A DNA stretch of 8,360 nt from Vitrella brassicaformis CCMP3155. Taxonomy: Eukaryota > Protista > Chromerida. The notes beneath the pieces were generated by a model. It was not told the DNA's origin, did not search any database, and saw only the letters and a program-made list of their open reading frames with translations. Made by a program: the position numbers and the translations under genes. The stretch lies in assembly GCA_001179505.1 (NCBI GenBank), contig CDMY01000955.1:1-8360 (forward strand), read 5' to 3'. This document shows positions 1-8,360 of this stretch, piece by piece; the first letter of the stretch is position 1, and the number at the start of each line of letters is the position of its first letter.

Positions 1-740
1 GGCCAGACGGCCAAGGGCATCCAGCACGACGTGTGGCGGTCGACCAACGGCATCGACTGGGAGCGGCTGAGCCGCCGCGCGCCGTGGAGGGGCCGACGGC
101 TGTTCCAGACCGCCGTCACGGGCTGGCCAGGCGGGAGTGAGGGCAAGAACATGAGCGTCTATGTGATGGGGGGCGAGGGGCTGAGCGAGGGACACCTCAG
201 CGACCCCTACAACGACGTGTGGAGGTCCGATGACCTCGGTAAGGCACATCCATAGGCGCACATGCGCGCATATGGTCTGCCTGCATCCCTTTCGTGCGCT
301 TCTATCCATCTGTCGCTGTGTGTAGGTGTGACGTGGTCTGAGGTGACGAAGTCGGCTTCCTGGTCTCCCCGTTATGGTTTTGGTGCGTTGGGATTCTTTC
401 ATGGCGGCCTCCTGGTCATAGGCGGGGCCACCATCTCTGACGGAGGCATGGACGAATACGTCAACGACATCTGGTGCGTACAAACGCCACGAAGACACCC
501 AGACCACAACTGCATCTTTTTGCTCGTCTTGTGTGTGTCGGTTCGTTCGTCAGGTATTCTCCTGACGGCGGCAAGACGTGGAAAGAGCTGCTGGCAAACG
601 AGACCAAGCCTTTCTCGCCCCGCGCCTTCTTCGGCCTAACTATCCGGATCAACGAGCTGTGGCTGATCGGCGGCATGCACCTTGCACAGCTCGGTCAGGG
701 ACGCGTCACCATCCCCACCAACGAGGTCTACAGGGCGATA
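1..740 (+). other. Kelch-like / Asp-box (BNR) beta-propeller repeats (at least 3 blades, partial)
   Basis: Repeating unit (A/P)-W/F-x-x-R...hydrophobic-GG...NDVW-x-S-x-D/N-G-x-x-W: HDVWRSTNGIDW, VYVMGG, NDVWRSDDLG|VTW, LLVIGG, NDIW|YSPDGGKTW, LWLIGG. SxDxGxTW is the Asp-box motif and the GG doublet is Kelch-like. Confidence 0.8.
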
Positions 741-3700
741 CTCAAGGCGCGAGAGACCTACCACGACGTCACCGACTGTGAGCAGTCAGCATGGAGCGAG
801 TGGACCCGATGTGACGGGCAGCGGACGCGCATCCGCACTACGATCACGGAGGCGCGAAATGGCGGGGAGCCGTGCGGAGATTCAGTTGAGACAGAGAACT
901 GCACCTTCCACGACGTCACCGACTGTGAGCAGTCAGCATGGAGCGAGTGGACCCGATGTGACGGGCAGCGGACGCGCATCCGCACTACGATCACGGAGGC
1001 GAATGGCGGGGAGCCGTGCGGACATTCGGTCGAGACAGAGAACTGCACCGTCCAACGGGTGGAGACGTGCGAGGGCGACGAATGCGCCGCGCGGACCGTC
1101 TTGTTCTCCCTCAGAGGCTGTCCATGCATCGAGAGGAGCTGCCAGAAGCCCGAGGAGGACGACGTGGATATCCCCGGTGCGCGCTTCTGCAGGGTCCCGA
1201 AGGAGGAGTGCGACAAGGGCCCATGCAAGTGCCTGGGGCCCATCTTTGGCCAGTATTACGATGCGTGCGTCGAGGGGGGCATCGAGCAGGTCTTCACAAA
1301 CGGTGGGTGCCGGTGCACCAAAGAGTGCCGGAGGCGGTCGTCCGACGATAAGCCGACGTGCCCGATCCATCCAAGGGAGGATTGTGCCGACCAGTCGGCA
1401 ACTGGCTCGTATACATTGCCTGAATGCGACAGTCCCAAGTGGGAGTACCAGCTGAGGCCGCCCACTTTCTGCGCGGGGGTGGAGCAGCGCCTCAGCAGCA
1501 GGAGGAAGGCACACTGGACGCATCTCGTGTATATGAACGCGGTGAGTGGGACGGACGCTGCCATGTCACGGAGACGACGCTTTCGTCCGTTTGTGTGTGT
1601 CCGTGTGTGTGCTGGTACATCAGGACAATAATTTGGAGAGCTATGCCATGAGTGACTTAAAGGAGATGCTTCAGATCCCCAAGAGCGACTTCAACCTGCT
1701 GGTGCTTGTCGACCGCGCCGACCCTGAGGTGGAGGATTCGTCTCATAGGGCGATCCACGATATGGTCATCTGTCCAAATGCCACCTCAGACGTCAATGCC
1801 AGAGTGGTATGCATACATGCACGCACGTCCAGTCATCTTCATCCCGACCGATAGAAGAGCATGGATGCCTCATTCGTTCTGTATTTGGATGGCGTCAGTT
1901 GGTTCAGGCAAGGCAGCAGTTTTCCGGGGCTTATGAGCTGCTGATGATTGGCGACCCGTACGAGAACCAGAACAGTACCAGCCGGCGCCGCTGGCTTCTG
2001 AAGAGGGACTTAGAAGAAACTAACATGGACGACGGCCAAGTGCTTCGGGTGGGTCAGACGAGACGGCGTCAAGACATGCCGCTTCCTTCCCAGATGACGA
2101 TTGCCCCTTCCCGTTCGTGTGTGCGATGTATGCAGGAATTCATCGGGGGCGCCTTGAAGGAGTTTCCCGCGGAGCACTACGCCCTCACTTTTTGGGATCA
2201 TGGCGTCGGCCGGAAAGGGTAAACTACCGCGGACAAAACGAAATGCATGTATCAAGAAGCCTGGGTGGACCGTGTGTGTACAGTTTCGGCGGCGATTCTA
2301 GCCACGGCAACTGGGATTCGCTGATGAGCCTCTGGGATCTAGAAACGAACATCAGAGTAAGCAACACAGACCATTCTACGCCATTGATCTTGCTTTCCTC
2401 TAACATCGAGCTTGTCTTGTCTTGTCTTGTCTTGTTTCATTATCCCAGGAAGGCGTTAAGGACGCGGGCATGCCTGATGACTTCCGCTTCGACCTTCTGT
2501 CGTTTGACGCGTGCCTCATGGCGTCGTATGAAGTCACAACGGCCCTCGCATCGCACGGACACTTCTTTCTCGGTCGGTGAATACCACCCATATCATGCAC
2601 AGACAGACAGCTGTTTTCAATACCAATCATGGCCCTCCTTCTCTTCTGCGTGTACGCATGCAGGCAGCGAGACCCTCATCAGCGGCACTGGCTGGGACTG
2701 GAAGTCGCTGAGACCCACACAGCCGAACGGCCAGGCGACGGAGCCATTGGAGTACGCCAGGAAGATCGCGCTGGCGACGATGGACTATTACGTGCGCAAC
2801 GACCGCCTCATGACTCTCGCCATTGTGGACCTCTACAAGATCCTGGAGTTCCGCGAGGCCTTCGCCCAACGCCAGAAGACGCTCACCAGCCGCCTGAACG
2901 ACTGCGTCCAGACAAAGGAGGTCGACCGCATCCGGACGGCCTATCAGAGGGCCGATGACAGTCTGCGAGGTCGCCAAGTCTCGCTATTCAGCCGTGAGAT
3001 AAAGAGTCCGGTGGACATGGGTCAGTTGCTGCAGCATCTGGAGACTGAGATGGAGCGGGTGATGCCAGCCGATGAGCTTGATGCTTTCTCTTTCAAGGTA
3101 CAGGAAGTACAGTCAGTGTACAATGCATTGGCGAATGGAAAATTGTGTTTTCAGGACGCCTACAAAAAGTACAACGAGAGCATCGTCTACTTCAATGGCT
3201 CGGACATTTACGGCAACATCCCCCTGACCGGTAAGGAAGTGTGGACATCGGTGGGCTTATGTAAGTAAGGAACTGCAATGCGTGTGTCAATGTCAGGTCT
3301 GCACGCTGATTTGACTGTGGAAGAGGAGCCGGCCACTTCCCGCTGGCTTGGGGCAGATGCGCATTCCACCGGCGAGTCATCTGCATCTGATGCTCGCCAG
3401 CTGCAGGAAGACGCCAAATGGAGAGCAGGCATCGTAAGGCGGCACGTACACTCACTGGACAGAGAGACCTTTGCTATGTCATGTTCCTTGCTGCCTCGCT
3501 GCGCAGAGCGACGACCCGATCTGGCAGAGCACCGGCACGCCGAACGACCTGCGGGTCTTTCTCGAGCCCATCTACGATACCAAGCGCGCCGTGTGTCGGG
3601 CGAGGAAGGGTCCACCGGAGTCTCAGCCCAAGTTTGTCATGCTCAACTGTGAGCTCTACTTCATGAGCAGTGCCGAGGAGGAGGCCGACAGCACTGCGGC

Positions 3701-4837
3701 AGCGCCGCGCTACCGTGTCGAGGCCTTCAGAAACACCTCTAGCGGAGCCGCCTCATACACGGTCAGTGAGGCAGCGGCGGACATTGCCGTGTAGCTATCG
3801 ATTGACCTGTCCTCCGTATGCTGTTCAGGCCTTGAAGGCCATTATGACCAGGCCCAAACCCGAGAATGATGGCAAGTTCCAGAAGGCCTTTGTGGTGGCG
3901 GAAGATGAGTCGCCCAAGAAGGATGAGCTGGCAGACTATGTGATCGACCGTGTGACGGCCGAGTGGGAGGGCGAGGGCTGGATACTCCATCAGAACCTCT
4001 GGACGGAGATCCAGAAGTTTACGACACGGGGTGACTGCGAGGCTCCCTCATGGATCAGAGAGTGCCCGGCGGGATTTGACGATGCACTGCCCCCACGCCG
4101 GGGGGCGGCCATTAATGAGGGAAGCGGCCGCACGTTCAACCGCCAGTGCGTGTGGCTGAGTGCGCTGGCGCCTCCTCGCAGCAATGGCGCCACCCGGCGA
4201 GTCCTGCAGATCCCTGCCCGCCTCTATCGCAGCTTCACCGACTTCACGCGCGAAGTGAAGGACGCTCGTCCCGCCACGCTGGTGATCGACTACGATGTCA
4301 AGACACCTTACAAAAGCCGCCTGTCTCTCTTTGCTGCAAATCGCTTTGGCGGTGAGGCGGAGGTGTCTTCGCGGGATTGGGGGCTGATCGAGCCGCTGCA
4401 CACGTACGTCAATCTCACGGCTGTGGAGGGTTCGGGTCGATACGACATGGCCGACGACGCGGGCATCCAGGTGGATATGCCGTCGTGCTTCGCATTCATG
4501 TAGGCGGACGGAGAGAGGGAGAGGCAAATGCATGTACACAACGTACATGTGGATACATAGGCATACGAGGGCGAGCCCCTCATTCGTGTGGGTGCTGTGC
4601 TTCAGGTGGGGCTCTGATCCTGAGGTTCCTGAACCTGAGGCGGACGAGATCGAGGTCTTGCAGTGGCCGCCAGCCCTCGGACAGGCAGAAGAGGCCGAAG
4701 GCGGAGCTTCTCAACGGGCTCTGCAAGATACTGACGACGACAAGCGTGGTACGTACTGCTATGGCATGACATATCCGATTATATACTTCACCATCTCTCC
4801 TTCTCTCTCTCTCTGTTTCTCTCTCTATCTCTCTCTC

Positions 4838-4869
<32 letters not shown>

Positions 4870-5522
4870 GTGCGTTGGGCATCAAAGTCAAGGAGATCAT
4901 AGGCGCGACGCCGACAGTGATCGGCAGCTTTATGGTCCTCTCAGACGCCAACACCAACTGTCCGGAGTTCGAGAAGGACCCGCCGGAGTATTGCAAGAAG
5001 TGTGAGGCCCTGGTGCAGGTGGATGAGTGCGACACAGAGAAGGAACTGCTCAATTGCAGTGGTATTTGTGGACGGTTTTGTGAGTCGCGGAATGGCGGGG
5101 CGCCTTGCGGACGCTCACCGGCTGTAGGTGTATTTCAAACTTTCCAGGGCAATGCAATAGAAGAAGAGGATAACGGCCACGACGTCACCGACTGTGAGCA
5201 GTCAGCATGGAGTGAGTGGACCCGATGTGACGGGCAGCGGACGCGCAACCGCACTACGATCACGGAGGCGCGAAATGGCGGGGAGCCGTGCGGAGATTCG
5301 GTTGAGACAGAGAACTGCACCCTCCAACTGGTGGAGCCGGTCTTGTTCTCGCTGACCGGATGCCCCTGCATTGAGAAGAGCTGTCAGAGAGAAGGCCTTA
5401 ATCAGCCAGGCTTCAAGGGCTTCTGTCAAGTTAGGAAAGAGGACTGCGGCGTCGGTTCATGGACGTGTACAAGTATCTCTGGCAGCTACGTCGATGCATG
5501 CGTTGACGGGGACGACGAGTAG
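1..5522 (+). CDS. Large spliced multidomain protein (5'-partial): Kelch/BNR propeller + TSP1 x2 + Cys-rich + clostripain-like C11 peptidase + unknown domain + linker + TSP1 + Cys-rich
   Basis: Manual exon model: <1-238, 326-473, 554-1541, 1624-1806, 1908-2048, 2136-2218, 2284-2356, 2449-2572, 2664-3097, 3155-3230, 3297-3433, 3507-3761, 3829-4499, 4606-4748, 4867-5522. All introns are GT..AG, 57-118 nt. Phases match at every junction and the total is 4350 nt (1450 codons including the stop). Splicing rebuilds recognisable motifs across junctions (NDIW|YSPDGGKTW, LVYMNA|DNNLES, VLR|EFIGG, FFLG|SETL). Exons after 4499 are less certain because the gene could end at TAG 4501-4503. Confidence 0.85.
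762..1049 (+). repeat. Two tandem thrombospondin type-1 (TSP1/TSR, spondin-type) coding repeats, period 147 nt
   Basis: HDVTDCEQSAWSEWTRCDGQRTRIRTTITEA(R)NGGEPCGxSVETENCT at 762-905 and 909-1049. WSxW, RxRxR and GGxxC are TSR hallmarks. The copies differ by 3 substitutions and one 3-nt deletion. Confidence 0.85.
1104..1427 (+). other. Tandem pair of unassigned Cys-rich modules (F-x3-GCxC...C...C...C)
   Basis: FSLRGCPCIERSC...FCRVPKEEC...YYDAC followed by FTNGGCRCTKEC...TCPIHPREDC...PEC. Also present in the duplicate at 5346-5672. Confidence 0.55.
1515..3313 (+). other. Clostripain-family (C11, clan CD) cysteine peptidase domain, unit 1, catalytic dyad intact
   Basis: The spliced sequence gives WTHLVYMNADNNLESYAMSDLKEM (typical C11 N-terminus), NMDDGQVLREFIGGALKEFPAEHYALTFWDHG (His codon 2199-2201), FDLLSFDACLM (Cys codon 2512-2514), FFLGSETLISGTGWDW and a later VDMGQL segment. 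Motifs recognised from knowledge of C11; no search was run. Confidence 0.85.
2411..2435. repeat. (CTTGT)5 microsatellite inside intron 2357-2448
   Basis: cttgtcttgtcttgtcttgtcttgt read directly from the sequence. Confidence 0.9.
3297..4499 (+). other. Unassigned ~350-aa region C-terminal to the C11 core
   Basis: Open across exons 11-13. Blocks shared with unit 2: FLEPIYDxKRxVCRA, WxGEGWIL, PSWIRECPxGF, RTFNRQCVWLSALxPPRxNGATRRVL. Confidence 0.55.
4802..4864. repeat. Compound (CT)n-(GT)13 microsatellite ending at the acceptor of intron 4749-4866
   Basis: Interrupted CT tract 4802-4838, then a GT tract 4839-4864 immediately before AG 4865-4866. Confidence 0.9.
5178..5321 (+). repeat. Third TSP1 repeat (start of the duplicated unit)
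   Basis: HDVTDCEQSAWSEWTRCDGQRTRNRTTITEARNGGEPCGDSVETENCT; 141/144 nt identical to 762-905 by manual comparison. Confidence 0.85.
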
Positions 5523-8267
5523 GTCTTCACCAACAACGGTTGCCGGTGCACCGATGAGTGCCGGAAGCGGTCAAGGAAGCGGTCGTCAGACGATAGGCCG
5601 ACGTGCCTGATCCATTGAATGGAGGATTGTGAAGACCAATCGGAAAGTGGCTCGTACCGATTGCCTGAATGCGACAGTCCCAAGTGGGCGTACCAGCTGA
5701 GGCCGCCCACTTTCTGTGCGGGGGTGGCAGAGCGCCTCGGCCGCAGGAGGAAGGCACACTGGACGCATCTCGTGTATATGAACGCGGTGAGTGGGACGGA
5801 CGCTGCCATGTCACGGAGACGACGCTTTCGTCCGTTTCGTGTGTGTCCGTGTGTGCTGGTATCATCAGGATAATAATTTGGAGAGCTATGCGATGGATGA
5901 CTTGAAAGAGATGCTTCAGATCCCCAAGGGCGACATCAACCTGCTGGTGCTCGTCGACCGCGCCGACCCTAAGGTGGACGACTCGTCGCACCGAGCCATC
6001 CACGAGATGGTCGTCTGCCCAGAAGTCACCCCAGAGGTCAACGCCAGAGAGGTATGCAGGCACAGGCACTCTCACAAACATACATACAGACAGACAGACG
6101 AGCGTTTATGGCTTTGCAGTAATGTGCGGTTCAGGTCAGACAGCAATTTTCTGAGACCTATGAGCTGCTGATGATCGGCGATCCGTATGAGAACGAGAAC
6201 AGCACCAGCAGGCGCCGCTGGCTGCTCAAGAGAGACTGGGGGGAGGCCAATATGGACGATGGGGAAGTGCTTCGAGTGAGTGGTGTGATAGCCATTGTCT
6301 CTATCGAGTGACAATGGCGGTCTTCTGTGGGTGTGCTTTTGTGTGGTTCTGGTGTTGTGTGCGAGTAGGAGTTTATCTCCAATGCGCTGAAGGATTTTCC
6401 CGCTGAGCATTACGCACTCACTTTTTAGGATCATGGCGTCGGCCGGAAAGGGTAACTGAAGCTAAACATGGAAGCATGCATCAACAGACCCTAGAATGGC
6501 AAATTTGTGTGGGGGTGTTGTTTGCAGGTTTGGTGGCGACTCCCACACGCCTGAACTTGCAGCACTGCTAAACCTCTTCGCTCTGGAGCAGGGCATTAGG
6601 GCAAGCAGAGCCTTGCTGAACCCGAGAATTGTTTCAGTGTCCTCTTTTGTTGACCACAGAATGGAGTCAAGGGTGCAGGCATGCCTGACGACTTCCGCTT
6701 CGACCTGCTATCATTCGACGCATGCCTGATGAGCTCATATGAGGTCACGTCTGCGCTGTCGGCGCAGGGACACTACTTTCTCGGTAGTGAACGTAATTAC
6801 TCAGTACAAGCGCCCTCTGCTGGCTTGCCTGACATGCTCTCTTACCGCGTCTTGCAGGAAGTGAGACCATTATTAGTGGCGATGGCTGGCGTTGGCAGTC
6901 CTTAAAACCCAACACAACTGGCAGCGATGGCAATGCAACCCCGCCGCTCGACTACGCCAGAGGCATCGCCCTAGCGACGATGGACTCCTACGTGCGGCAG
7001 CATCGATTGATGAATCTCGCCATTGTCGACCTGTACAAGCAGCACGAGTTCCGCTAGGCCTTCGCCAAGAGCCAGCAGAGGCTTGTAAGTCGGCTGGACA
7101 CGTGTATGAAGACAGTCGAGGTCGATCGCGTCCGGACGGCTCATCAGAACGCCGACGACGGACTGCGAGGGTACAAGCAAGAGCTATTCAGCCGTGACAT
7201 CGCTAATCCGGTGGACATGGGCCATCTACTGCGTTCTCTGGAGTCAGAGATGGAGCGCGTGATGCCGTCAGAGGAGCTGGAGATCCTCAGAGAGGCTTAT
7301 CGACTGTACAACCAAAGCATCCTCTACTCCAATGCATCTAGTGGATTTGAGGCCATTCCGTTGACAGGTCCGCATAATTCATCACGACACACAGAAGACA
7401 CACAGTAACGAAACATGAGTATTTGTCCGTATGTCGTTTCATCAGGAGTGCATGTCGATCTGCCTCGGAAGCCAGGGCATCATCGGTGGCTCACAGCGAT
7501 GGGTTCGCCCGCGCTGCCTGCAAGTTGTGAGCTGCAGGTCAATAACGCCACGATATGGGGAGCGACGATCCAACAAGATGAGTACTGGCAGGAGTTCGGC
7601 ACGCCGAGGGACTTGATGGTTTTCCTCGAACCCATCTACGACATCAAGCGCACTGTGTGTCGTGCGGGGCAGAGTCAAGAAGACAGCGATGTGCCCTTTC
7701 GATTTATCAACTCTACTCTTTACCTGATGACCAACGCCACTGTGAAGGAAGACTCGACCACCGCAGAGGCGTTGACGTCTTCAGAAGACAAGCCCTCGCT
7801 ACTCTACAAAATCGAAGTTAGAAACACATCTGACGGAGTTGCTTCCTACACGGTGGGGCGAAGAGCAAGAGAGCGAATCATAATGACTGCATGAGTGCAT
7901 CCTTCATTGCGTTCAGGCCCTGAAGGCCATGGTGACTAAACCCGAATCCGACAGTACCACGTCCCGCCGGGCCTTTGTGGTGACTACAGAAGAGCCACCA
8001 GATAAGGAAGAACGGCGAGAAGCGGGCATCCGATCGATCACGTGACGGCCGACTGGCAGGGCGAGGGCTGGATCCTCTATCAACGCATCTGGGGAGGTAT
8101 CGATGGCAATTTGACACGGTCCAAATGCAACGTCCCCTCGTGGATCAGAGAATGCCCTGAGGGTTTCAGCAATGCCGACAGGAGCAACCGGACATTCAAC
8201 CGCCAGTGTGTATGGCTGAGTGCGCTGGTGCCTCCTCGCAGGAATGGAGCTACCCGGCGAGTCCTGC
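5523..8267 (+). pseudogene. Decayed, telomere-truncated second copy of the Cys-rich + C11 peptidase + unknown-domain unit
   Basis: Exons 4867-5786, 5869-6051, 6135-6275, 6369-6451, 6528-6600, 6660-6783, 6858-7367, 7446-7852, 7917-8267. Internal exon lengths 183/141/83/73/124 equal those of unit 1. In-frame stops at 5520 (TAG vs CAG), 5616 (TGA vs CCA), 6426 (TAG vs TGG) and 7055 (TAG vs GAG). Frameshift at ~8010-8035. GC donor at 6601. His 6432-6434 and Cys 6723-6725 are retained. Confidence 0.82.
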
Positions 8268-8360
8268 CTTAGGGTTTAGGGTTTAGGGTCTAGGGGTTAG
8301 GGTTTAGGGGGTAGGGTTTAGGGTTTAGGGTTTAGGGGTTTAGGGGTTTAGGGGTTTACG
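8268..8360 (+). repeat. Telomeric repeat tract, TTTAGGG type with variants (TTAGGG, TCTAGGGG, TTTAGGGG)
   Basis: About 12 units. The G-rich strand runs 5'->3' toward the window end, the orientation expected at a right chromosome end. Confidence 0.9.

Follow-up and report, generated by a model that had tools for sequence, protein, structure and literature searches.

Tandem genes and telomere-type repeats at a contig end

The stretch of DNA analysed here, referred to as the window, comprises the 8360 nucleotides (nt) of contig CDMY01000955.1 from the chromerid Vitrella brassicaformis CCMP3155 (assembly GCA_001179505.1) and has a G+C content of 53–64%. It contains a multi-exon gene in two tandem copies, units 1 and 2, whose starts lie ~4.2 kb apart (repeat finder, families D1–D13), and it ends in telomere-type repeats that are joined directly to unit 2 at position 8267. 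A first-pass annotation, made from the letters alone, had taken this join for the de novo healing of a chromosome end inside a coding exon.

The pair is made up of Kelch/TSP1/clostripain-like (C11-peptidase) genes, both on the + strand. The multi-exon gene of unit 1 (1–4503) appears intact, as indicated by stop-free exon frames, Pfam matches and coverage by paralogues. Kelch-like exons (1 to ~750) lie ahead of unit 1 proper (~761–4500), which opens with two TSP1 repeats (761–1057; Pfam TSP1_spondin, E 1.4e-10; TSP_1, E 1.9e-6) and continues through a Cys-rich region to clostripain-like C11 exons, which start at 1624 and match Pfam Peptidase_C11 with a sub-threshold 21.4 bits (cut-off 25.8). 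The conserved C-terminal exon (3829–4500) has no Pfam family match and is spanned by two paralogues from protein searches with single exons, P0001 (66% identity), derived from a JGI transcript contig, and P0002 (46% identity), encoded in record CDMY01000541.1 of V. brassicaformis CCMP3155.

The gene of unit 1 probably does not end with this exon. The paralogue transcript L001 aligns to 3835–4504, 4601–4692 and 4965–5043, and the P0001 protein goes on with ...AAFMWGSD...EVLQWPP..., followed by a Cys-rich tail. Splice sites read from the sequence (donor, 4500; acceptors, 4606 and 4867) preserve the reading frame of unit 1. The splicing of L001, the P0001 protein and the frame phases thus point to two more 3´ exons, at 4606–4748 and at 4867 to ~5100. 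The unit 1 stop at 4501 is probably spliced out via the donor at 4500, as it is in L001. The spliced frame is open beyond the end of P0001 and into a TSP1 repeat of unit 2, until the TAG at 5520, and gene 1 may carry a chimeric 3´ end.

Unit 2 (5177–8267, + strand) reads as the tandem paralogue of unit 1, now a truncated pseudogene that ends at 8267. It is followed, from 8269 to 8360 on the + strand, by a telomere tract defined by Tandem Repeats Finder (TRF), a pattern scan and a parse into units, with the G-rich strand running 5´ to 3´ toward the window end.

The junction at 8267

Global alignment (741–4520 against 5157–8290) places the end of homology between the two units exactly at 4207/8267, and the final 85 nt before it (4123–4207 against 8183–8267; repeat finder, family D11) are 88% identical. 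That unit 2 tracks unit 1 up to this point had been noted in the first-pass annotation, as had the abruptness of the switch, and both observations stand. Past 4207, unit 1 reads AGATCCCTGCCC (..VLQIPARL..); past 8267, unit 2 reads C and then TTAGGG TTTAGGG, with telomere-type units starting at once and no subtelomeric spacer.

TRF reports a period of 7 and 12.4 copies at 8269–8358 (consensus TTAGGGT). The pattern TTTAGGGTTTAGGG, equivalent to two units with at most two mismatches, has 11 matches between 8268 and 8353, compared to 0.02 expected by chance, and none elsewhere in the window. All 11 are on the + strand and directed outward, which bears out the claim that the G-strand lies in the orientation in which telomerase would write it. 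The tract can be parsed into 13 units: CTTAGGG, TTTAGGG twice, TCTAGGG, GTTAGGG, TTTAGGG, GGTAGGG, TTTAGGG three times, GTTTAGGG twice, and GTTTACG at the window end. The telomerase of Chromera velia synthesises TTTAGGG (PMC3622300), and a literature search returned nothing on telomeres or chromosome ends of Vitrella.

The five substitutions in the tract, of which the C at 8268 is one, are all at unit positions 1–2, and none touches TAGGG. If mutation were uniform, five out of five at these positions would have a chance of (2/7)^5, or ~0.002. With the substitutions confined in this way, the pattern of variants suggests slippage of telomerase or of its translocation and fits an old internal tract decaying at random less well. 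The C at 8268 (+ strand) is an orphan in that it is neither the A expected from the paralogues, where it belongs to a conserved Gln codon (CAG/CAA), nor a canonical telomere base, and the best reading makes it the first position of a variant opening unit, CTTAGGG. The sequence also suggests that synthesis began at unit position 1 on a non-complementary end.

A telomere-like seed was looked for in the alignment at the corresponding point in unit 1 and in two further paralogues, L001 and L002 (from CDMY01000541.1), and was not found in any of them, which widens the comparison on which the same claim had originally been based. At the junction, unit 1 and L001 read CTGCAGATCCC and L002 reads TTGCAAATACC. 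In unit 2 the sequence is CTGC-CTTAGGG, and over the seven bases after CTGC its agreement with the paralogues is 0/7; hence no seed is visible. The bases before the junction are ...CCTGC(C), and the ancestral AGATCCC, as reconstructed from the paralogues, shares no base with CTTAGGG. The test for complementarity to the telomerase RNA template at the junction was accordingly negative, with 0 nt if unit 2 once resembled its paralogues. Complementarity between junction and template is usual, but not obligatory, in healed ends. The motifs LQIPA(R/H) and CTGCA(G/A)AT are kept at the site in unit 1, L001 and L002; with three paralogues retaining them, the lost sequence would have been conserved and without a telomere-like seed. 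No hairpin or inverted repeat was found around the junction (8050–8360), where the DNA fold z-score is +1.0.

The counterpart of the junction in unit 1 is 4207/4208, from where the exon goes on for 293 nt or 98 codons (4208–4500). What the homologues carry distal to 8267 is missing from unit 2, the comparators being paralogues and not an allele, and the exons at 4606–4748 and 4867–~5100 likewise have no counterpart after unit 2. By this comparison, the loss from unit 2 amounts to 98 codons of a conserved exon and at least two further exons. The ~98 missing codons of the first-pass annotation are therefore right for the exon that was cut and too few for the gene, in which L001 identifies two more exons. 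A unit 2 copy that lacks the part from LQIPA(R/H) onward would probably be non-functional.

The evidence from reads consists of Logan contigs of short-read runs. Such contigs drop rare variants, and rare alternative forms at the junction could escape them. A contig of run X1 (record 8, 1630 nt) covers 6680–8309 with 0 differences and crosses the junction by 42 nt. Its depth is 43.3, compared to 43–70 in neighbouring single-copy contigs, and it shows no branch at 8267. A second contig, L003 (ERR558151, 1662 nt), is 100% identical to 6680–8341 and reaches 74 nt into the tract, variant units included. The junction is real in the sequencing data at about single-copy depth. The tract itself is confirmed to 8309 by the X1 contig and to 8341 by L003, and its final 19 nt come from the assembly alone.

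Contigs from other runs approach the junction. The X3 contig (L004, ERR558200) follows the window to 8128, beyond which it continues in 23 unlike letters, which we considered as a second junction and rejected, as they are the Nextera mate-pair adapter (L004 1338–1360). Adapter read-through in ERR558200 can mimic a rearrangement breakpoint. In run X4, the depth is ~4–6 and the contig fades near 8163, an end point computed from bin depths. The same run has a loose end at 8291 that belongs to a contig of another chromosome end, in which 177 nt of unrelated unique sequence lead directly into telomere units, giving the organism a second junction of the spacer-less type.

Decay of unit 2 and relatives of the gene pair

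Unit 2 carries five disabling changes at places where alignment and codon analysis find the frames of unit 1 open. Four are stops: TAG at 5520 (CAG in unit 1), TGA at 5616 (CCA), TAG at 6426 (TGG) and TAG at 7055 (GAG). The fifth is a 5-nt insertion at ~8017–8024, absent from unit 1, which shifts the frame to a TGA at 8043. The four stops lie inside zero-difference contigs of X1, X3 and X4, and the frameshift inside those of X1 and X3; coverage of the frameshift by X4 is deduced from depth figures only. On the strength of these changes, unit 2 is classified as a pseudogene. It follows that the “coding exon” of the first-pass annotation is better described as the exon-derived end of a dead copy.

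The two units have diverged by 0.60 at synonymous sites (dS) and 0.18 at nonsynonymous sites (dN), with a dN/dS of 0.30 (Nei-Gojobori, 747 aligned codons) that drops to 0.03–0.15 in the central peptidase exons. A dN/dS of 0.30 at a dS of 0.60 implies that most of the divergence took place under selection on both copies and that the decay of unit 2 came later. Assuming that ~4% of random substitutions create stops, the four stops in ~2250 nt correspond to an unconstrained divergence of unit 2 of ~4%, a rough figure with a range of ~1–11%. Neutral divergence of this order is far beyond what accumulates in culture, and the decay is thus not an event of culture age.

Several features of the pair relate to its history as a duplicate. 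Identity between the units falls from 86–97% in the 5´ third to ~70–79% telomere-ward. Patches of recent gene conversion are found within this old duplicate (overall identity 78%, dS 0.6): a 95-nt identical run (1498–1592 and 5743–5837) crosses an exon-intron boundary, and three TSP1 repeats (761–1057; 5177–5326) are ~97% alike. A 57-nt intron of unit 1 (3098–3154) is absent from unit 2 (7277–7290) and from the paralogue L002 (9570–9594), which looks like a gain in unit 1 or parallel losses. At the position of another unit 1 intron (3435–3496), unit 2 reads straight through. A compound (TC)n(TG)n microsatellite (4794–4864) fills the intron ahead of the exon at 4867, and Logan contigs break there.

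Relatives occur elsewhere in the genome and beyond. The P0001 gene is present in the window’s own sequencing runs, as X1 and X3 contigs show the same five differences at 4352–4373 as L001. The contig at 4352–4373 was considered as the missing tail of unit 2 and rejected, since by these differences it is a genomic copy of the complete, separate paralogue L001. In L002 (CDMY01000541.1, 5393–17248), a C11 paralogue is annotated as two genes of 275 amino acids (Peptidase_C11) and 336 amino acids, and is flanked by a DEAH-type helicase (Helicase_C, OB_NTP_bind, DHX37_C) and a PIF1 helicase. Marine-sediment metagenomes from 2023–2025 contain pieces identical or ~95% identical to this locus. A contig of run X11 (7998–8152) has an extra G behind 8021 that would turn the 5-nt insertion of unit 2 into an in-frame one of 6 nt, and this contig may represent an intact orthologue or paralogue from wild relatives.

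Origin of the junction and known parallels

The locus is most simply read as a terminal break to which a telomere was then added. We consider it likely that the window reaches a true chromosome end, at which a terminal break in the distal, now decayed gene copy was capped by telomerase without a seed. The tandem Kelch/TSP1/C11-peptidase pair would then adjoin the chromosome end, and unit 2 would have lost all beyond the position equivalent to 4207 by a terminal break or by erosion. Telomerase would have written chromerid-type TTTAGGG repeats straight onto the resected 3´ end, where no complementary seed is visible, starting synthesis from position 1 of the repeat unit. The truncation may have killed unit 2 and the stops come after, or unit 2 may already have been dead when it was cut. 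We infer that the tract is the physical terminus and that it was written by telomerase rather than acquired by telomere capture; the order of events has the same standing. Of the original proposal, a terminal deletion healed by telomerase inside a gene, the healing remains as the simplest reading and the gene turns out to be a decayed copy. Nothing shows that the healing was recent, as “de novo” had implied.

Several observations weigh against a healed chromosome end. The two bridging runs (X1 and ERR558151) probably come from the project behind the assembly and, being probably its own data, do not confirm the junction independently, and the X3 and X4 contigs, which come from two other studies, end short of it. 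A search with the final 88 unit 2 residues among JGI metagenome and transcriptome contigs gave 598 pattern matches and no relative representing an intact or expressed unit 2, so that no intact allele or orthologue from that scan defines the deletion directly. Exact look-ups of two short open reading frames of unit 2 had no match either, which carries no weight, the frame at 8042 starting with a GTG that was translated as V where gene callers put M. In Plasmodium falciparum, annealing to the telomerase template was possible in one register at nine out of nine healing sites, with GGGTT added first (PMC5550746); unlike these, the Vitrella junction has no visible complementarity, and the first bases of its tract are those at the T end of the unit. 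Finally, the window and both bridging contigs end inside repeats, and a kilobase-long array or distal DNA would be beyond their reach.

This last point also speaks for a different explanation, in which an interstitial telomere-like tract marks the place where the short-read assembly broke and chromosomal DNA continues past 8360. Such a tract could stem from an end that had healed and then underwent re-extension or fusion, or from the insertion, in the dead copy, of a dispersed element with telomere-like repeats. The degeneracy of the repeat units is in keeping with this. However, the units, at least 13 of them, extend to the contig end, and their variants spare TAGGG fully, unlike random decay. 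The orientation is that of a terminus, although a random interstitial tract would have it with a prior of 50%, and the junction has neither hairpin nor inverted repeat. Among the loose ends listed, with 62 further rows outside the listing, no contig carries unit-2-type sequence after repeats. On balance, we regard an interstitial tract as unlikely.

The age of the cut bears on another alternative, namely that a working gene was healed recently, within the age of the culture, or is still heterogeneous, with some cells keeping the full-length exon. The junction itself gives no date for the cut, and the TAGGG cores have 0 substitutions at ~65 positions, compared to ~2.6 expected at the age of the pseudogene decay, a weak indication (p ~0.07). 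Yet four stops, a frameshift and ~4% neutral divergence argue that the gene was not working shortly before. The X1 contig, moreover, runs unbranched past 8267 at the depth of its neighbours, with the reservation that contigs lose rare variants. We regard a recent event as very unlikely.

Programmed fragmentation of the type known in ciliates, with primer-independent telomere addition, had been raised as a speculative option in the first-pass annotation. It would account for the lack of complementarity at the junction and for addition starting at unit position 1, and ciliates, too, are alveolates, with neotelomeres in gene bodies described for Paramecium (PMC13076228). Beyond the seedless join it finds no support. 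There is a single site and no motif to compare, the depth equals that of the adjoining DNA, and what was cut is a decayed pseudogene, the outcome one would expect if the loss was accidental and tolerated. Furthermore, we know of no germline/soma dualism in chromerids. These considerations make a programmed site highly improbable. The chance of a chimera of unit 2 and telomeric reads, made in assembly or library, is close to nil: contig L004 does end in a Nextera mate-pair adapter artefact, but two separately built contigs from different runs have an identical junction and variant units at ~43x and 0 differences, and this concordance excludes an assembly chimera.

Healing of a broken end by telomerase in a truncated gene copy, the reading we prefer, has close parallels in malaria parasites. 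In the P. falciparum 3D7 reference, five out of 28 chromosome ends lack subtelomeric elements, their repeats being fused into coding regions or adjoining them; of these ends, four lie in truncated var genes, “creating a pseudogene”, and breaks induced by X-rays were healed likewise (PMC5550746). Deletions of pfhrp2 also arise through breakage and healing (PMC11458181). The Vitrella junction resembles the P. falciparum ends in that repeats are fused into the coding sequence of a subtelomeric multigene family, leaving a truncated pseudogene and no subtelomeric elements, and in that the lineages are related (Myzozoa) and share a TTTAGGG-type repeat. It differs in that the event in Vitrella is deduced from paralogues and not from an intact allele.

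Other systems are more distant. Paramecium is also an alveolate in which telomeres are added within gene bodies, but this occurs in a somatic, polyploid macronucleus (PMC13076228) and is progressive and heterogeneous, unlike the one fixed junction at single-copy depth in Vitrella. Human terminal deletions stabilised by neotelomeres (PMC4427916, PMC3136441) are similar in that a break in unique sequence is capped directly by telomere repeats; these cases are pathological and recent and the intact allele is known, unlike the case in Vitrella. Interstitial telomeric sequences similarly have degenerate telomere-type units adjoining unique DNA (PMC6410037). They have unique DNA on both sides, whereas in Vitrella neither the window nor L003 shows any past the tract, and the variants spare TAGGG.

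In conclusion, the process is already well known in malaria parasites, and the Vitrella junction is a case of the same kind in a chromerid, which may depart from known cases in one respect, namely that no complementarity is visible where the repeats begin. Taken alone, it is ordinary subtelomere biology and would be more only if many such ends were present genome-wide. One far-reaching idea, to which we give little credence, is that telomeres are routinely added inside genes in Vitrella, independently of a seed, and that a cycle of breakage, healing and re-extension would turn over and duplicate subtelomeric families in this free-living relative of the Apicomplexa. If true, the process by which var-type families diversify in Plasmodium would be older than parasitism. 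The junction provides a concrete, read-supported case for chromerid telomerase, with its start register, its variant units and an apparent lack of a seed requirement, and it would extend telomerase healing inside a gene of a subtelomeric family beyond malaria parasites, to a relative that is free-living and photosynthetic.

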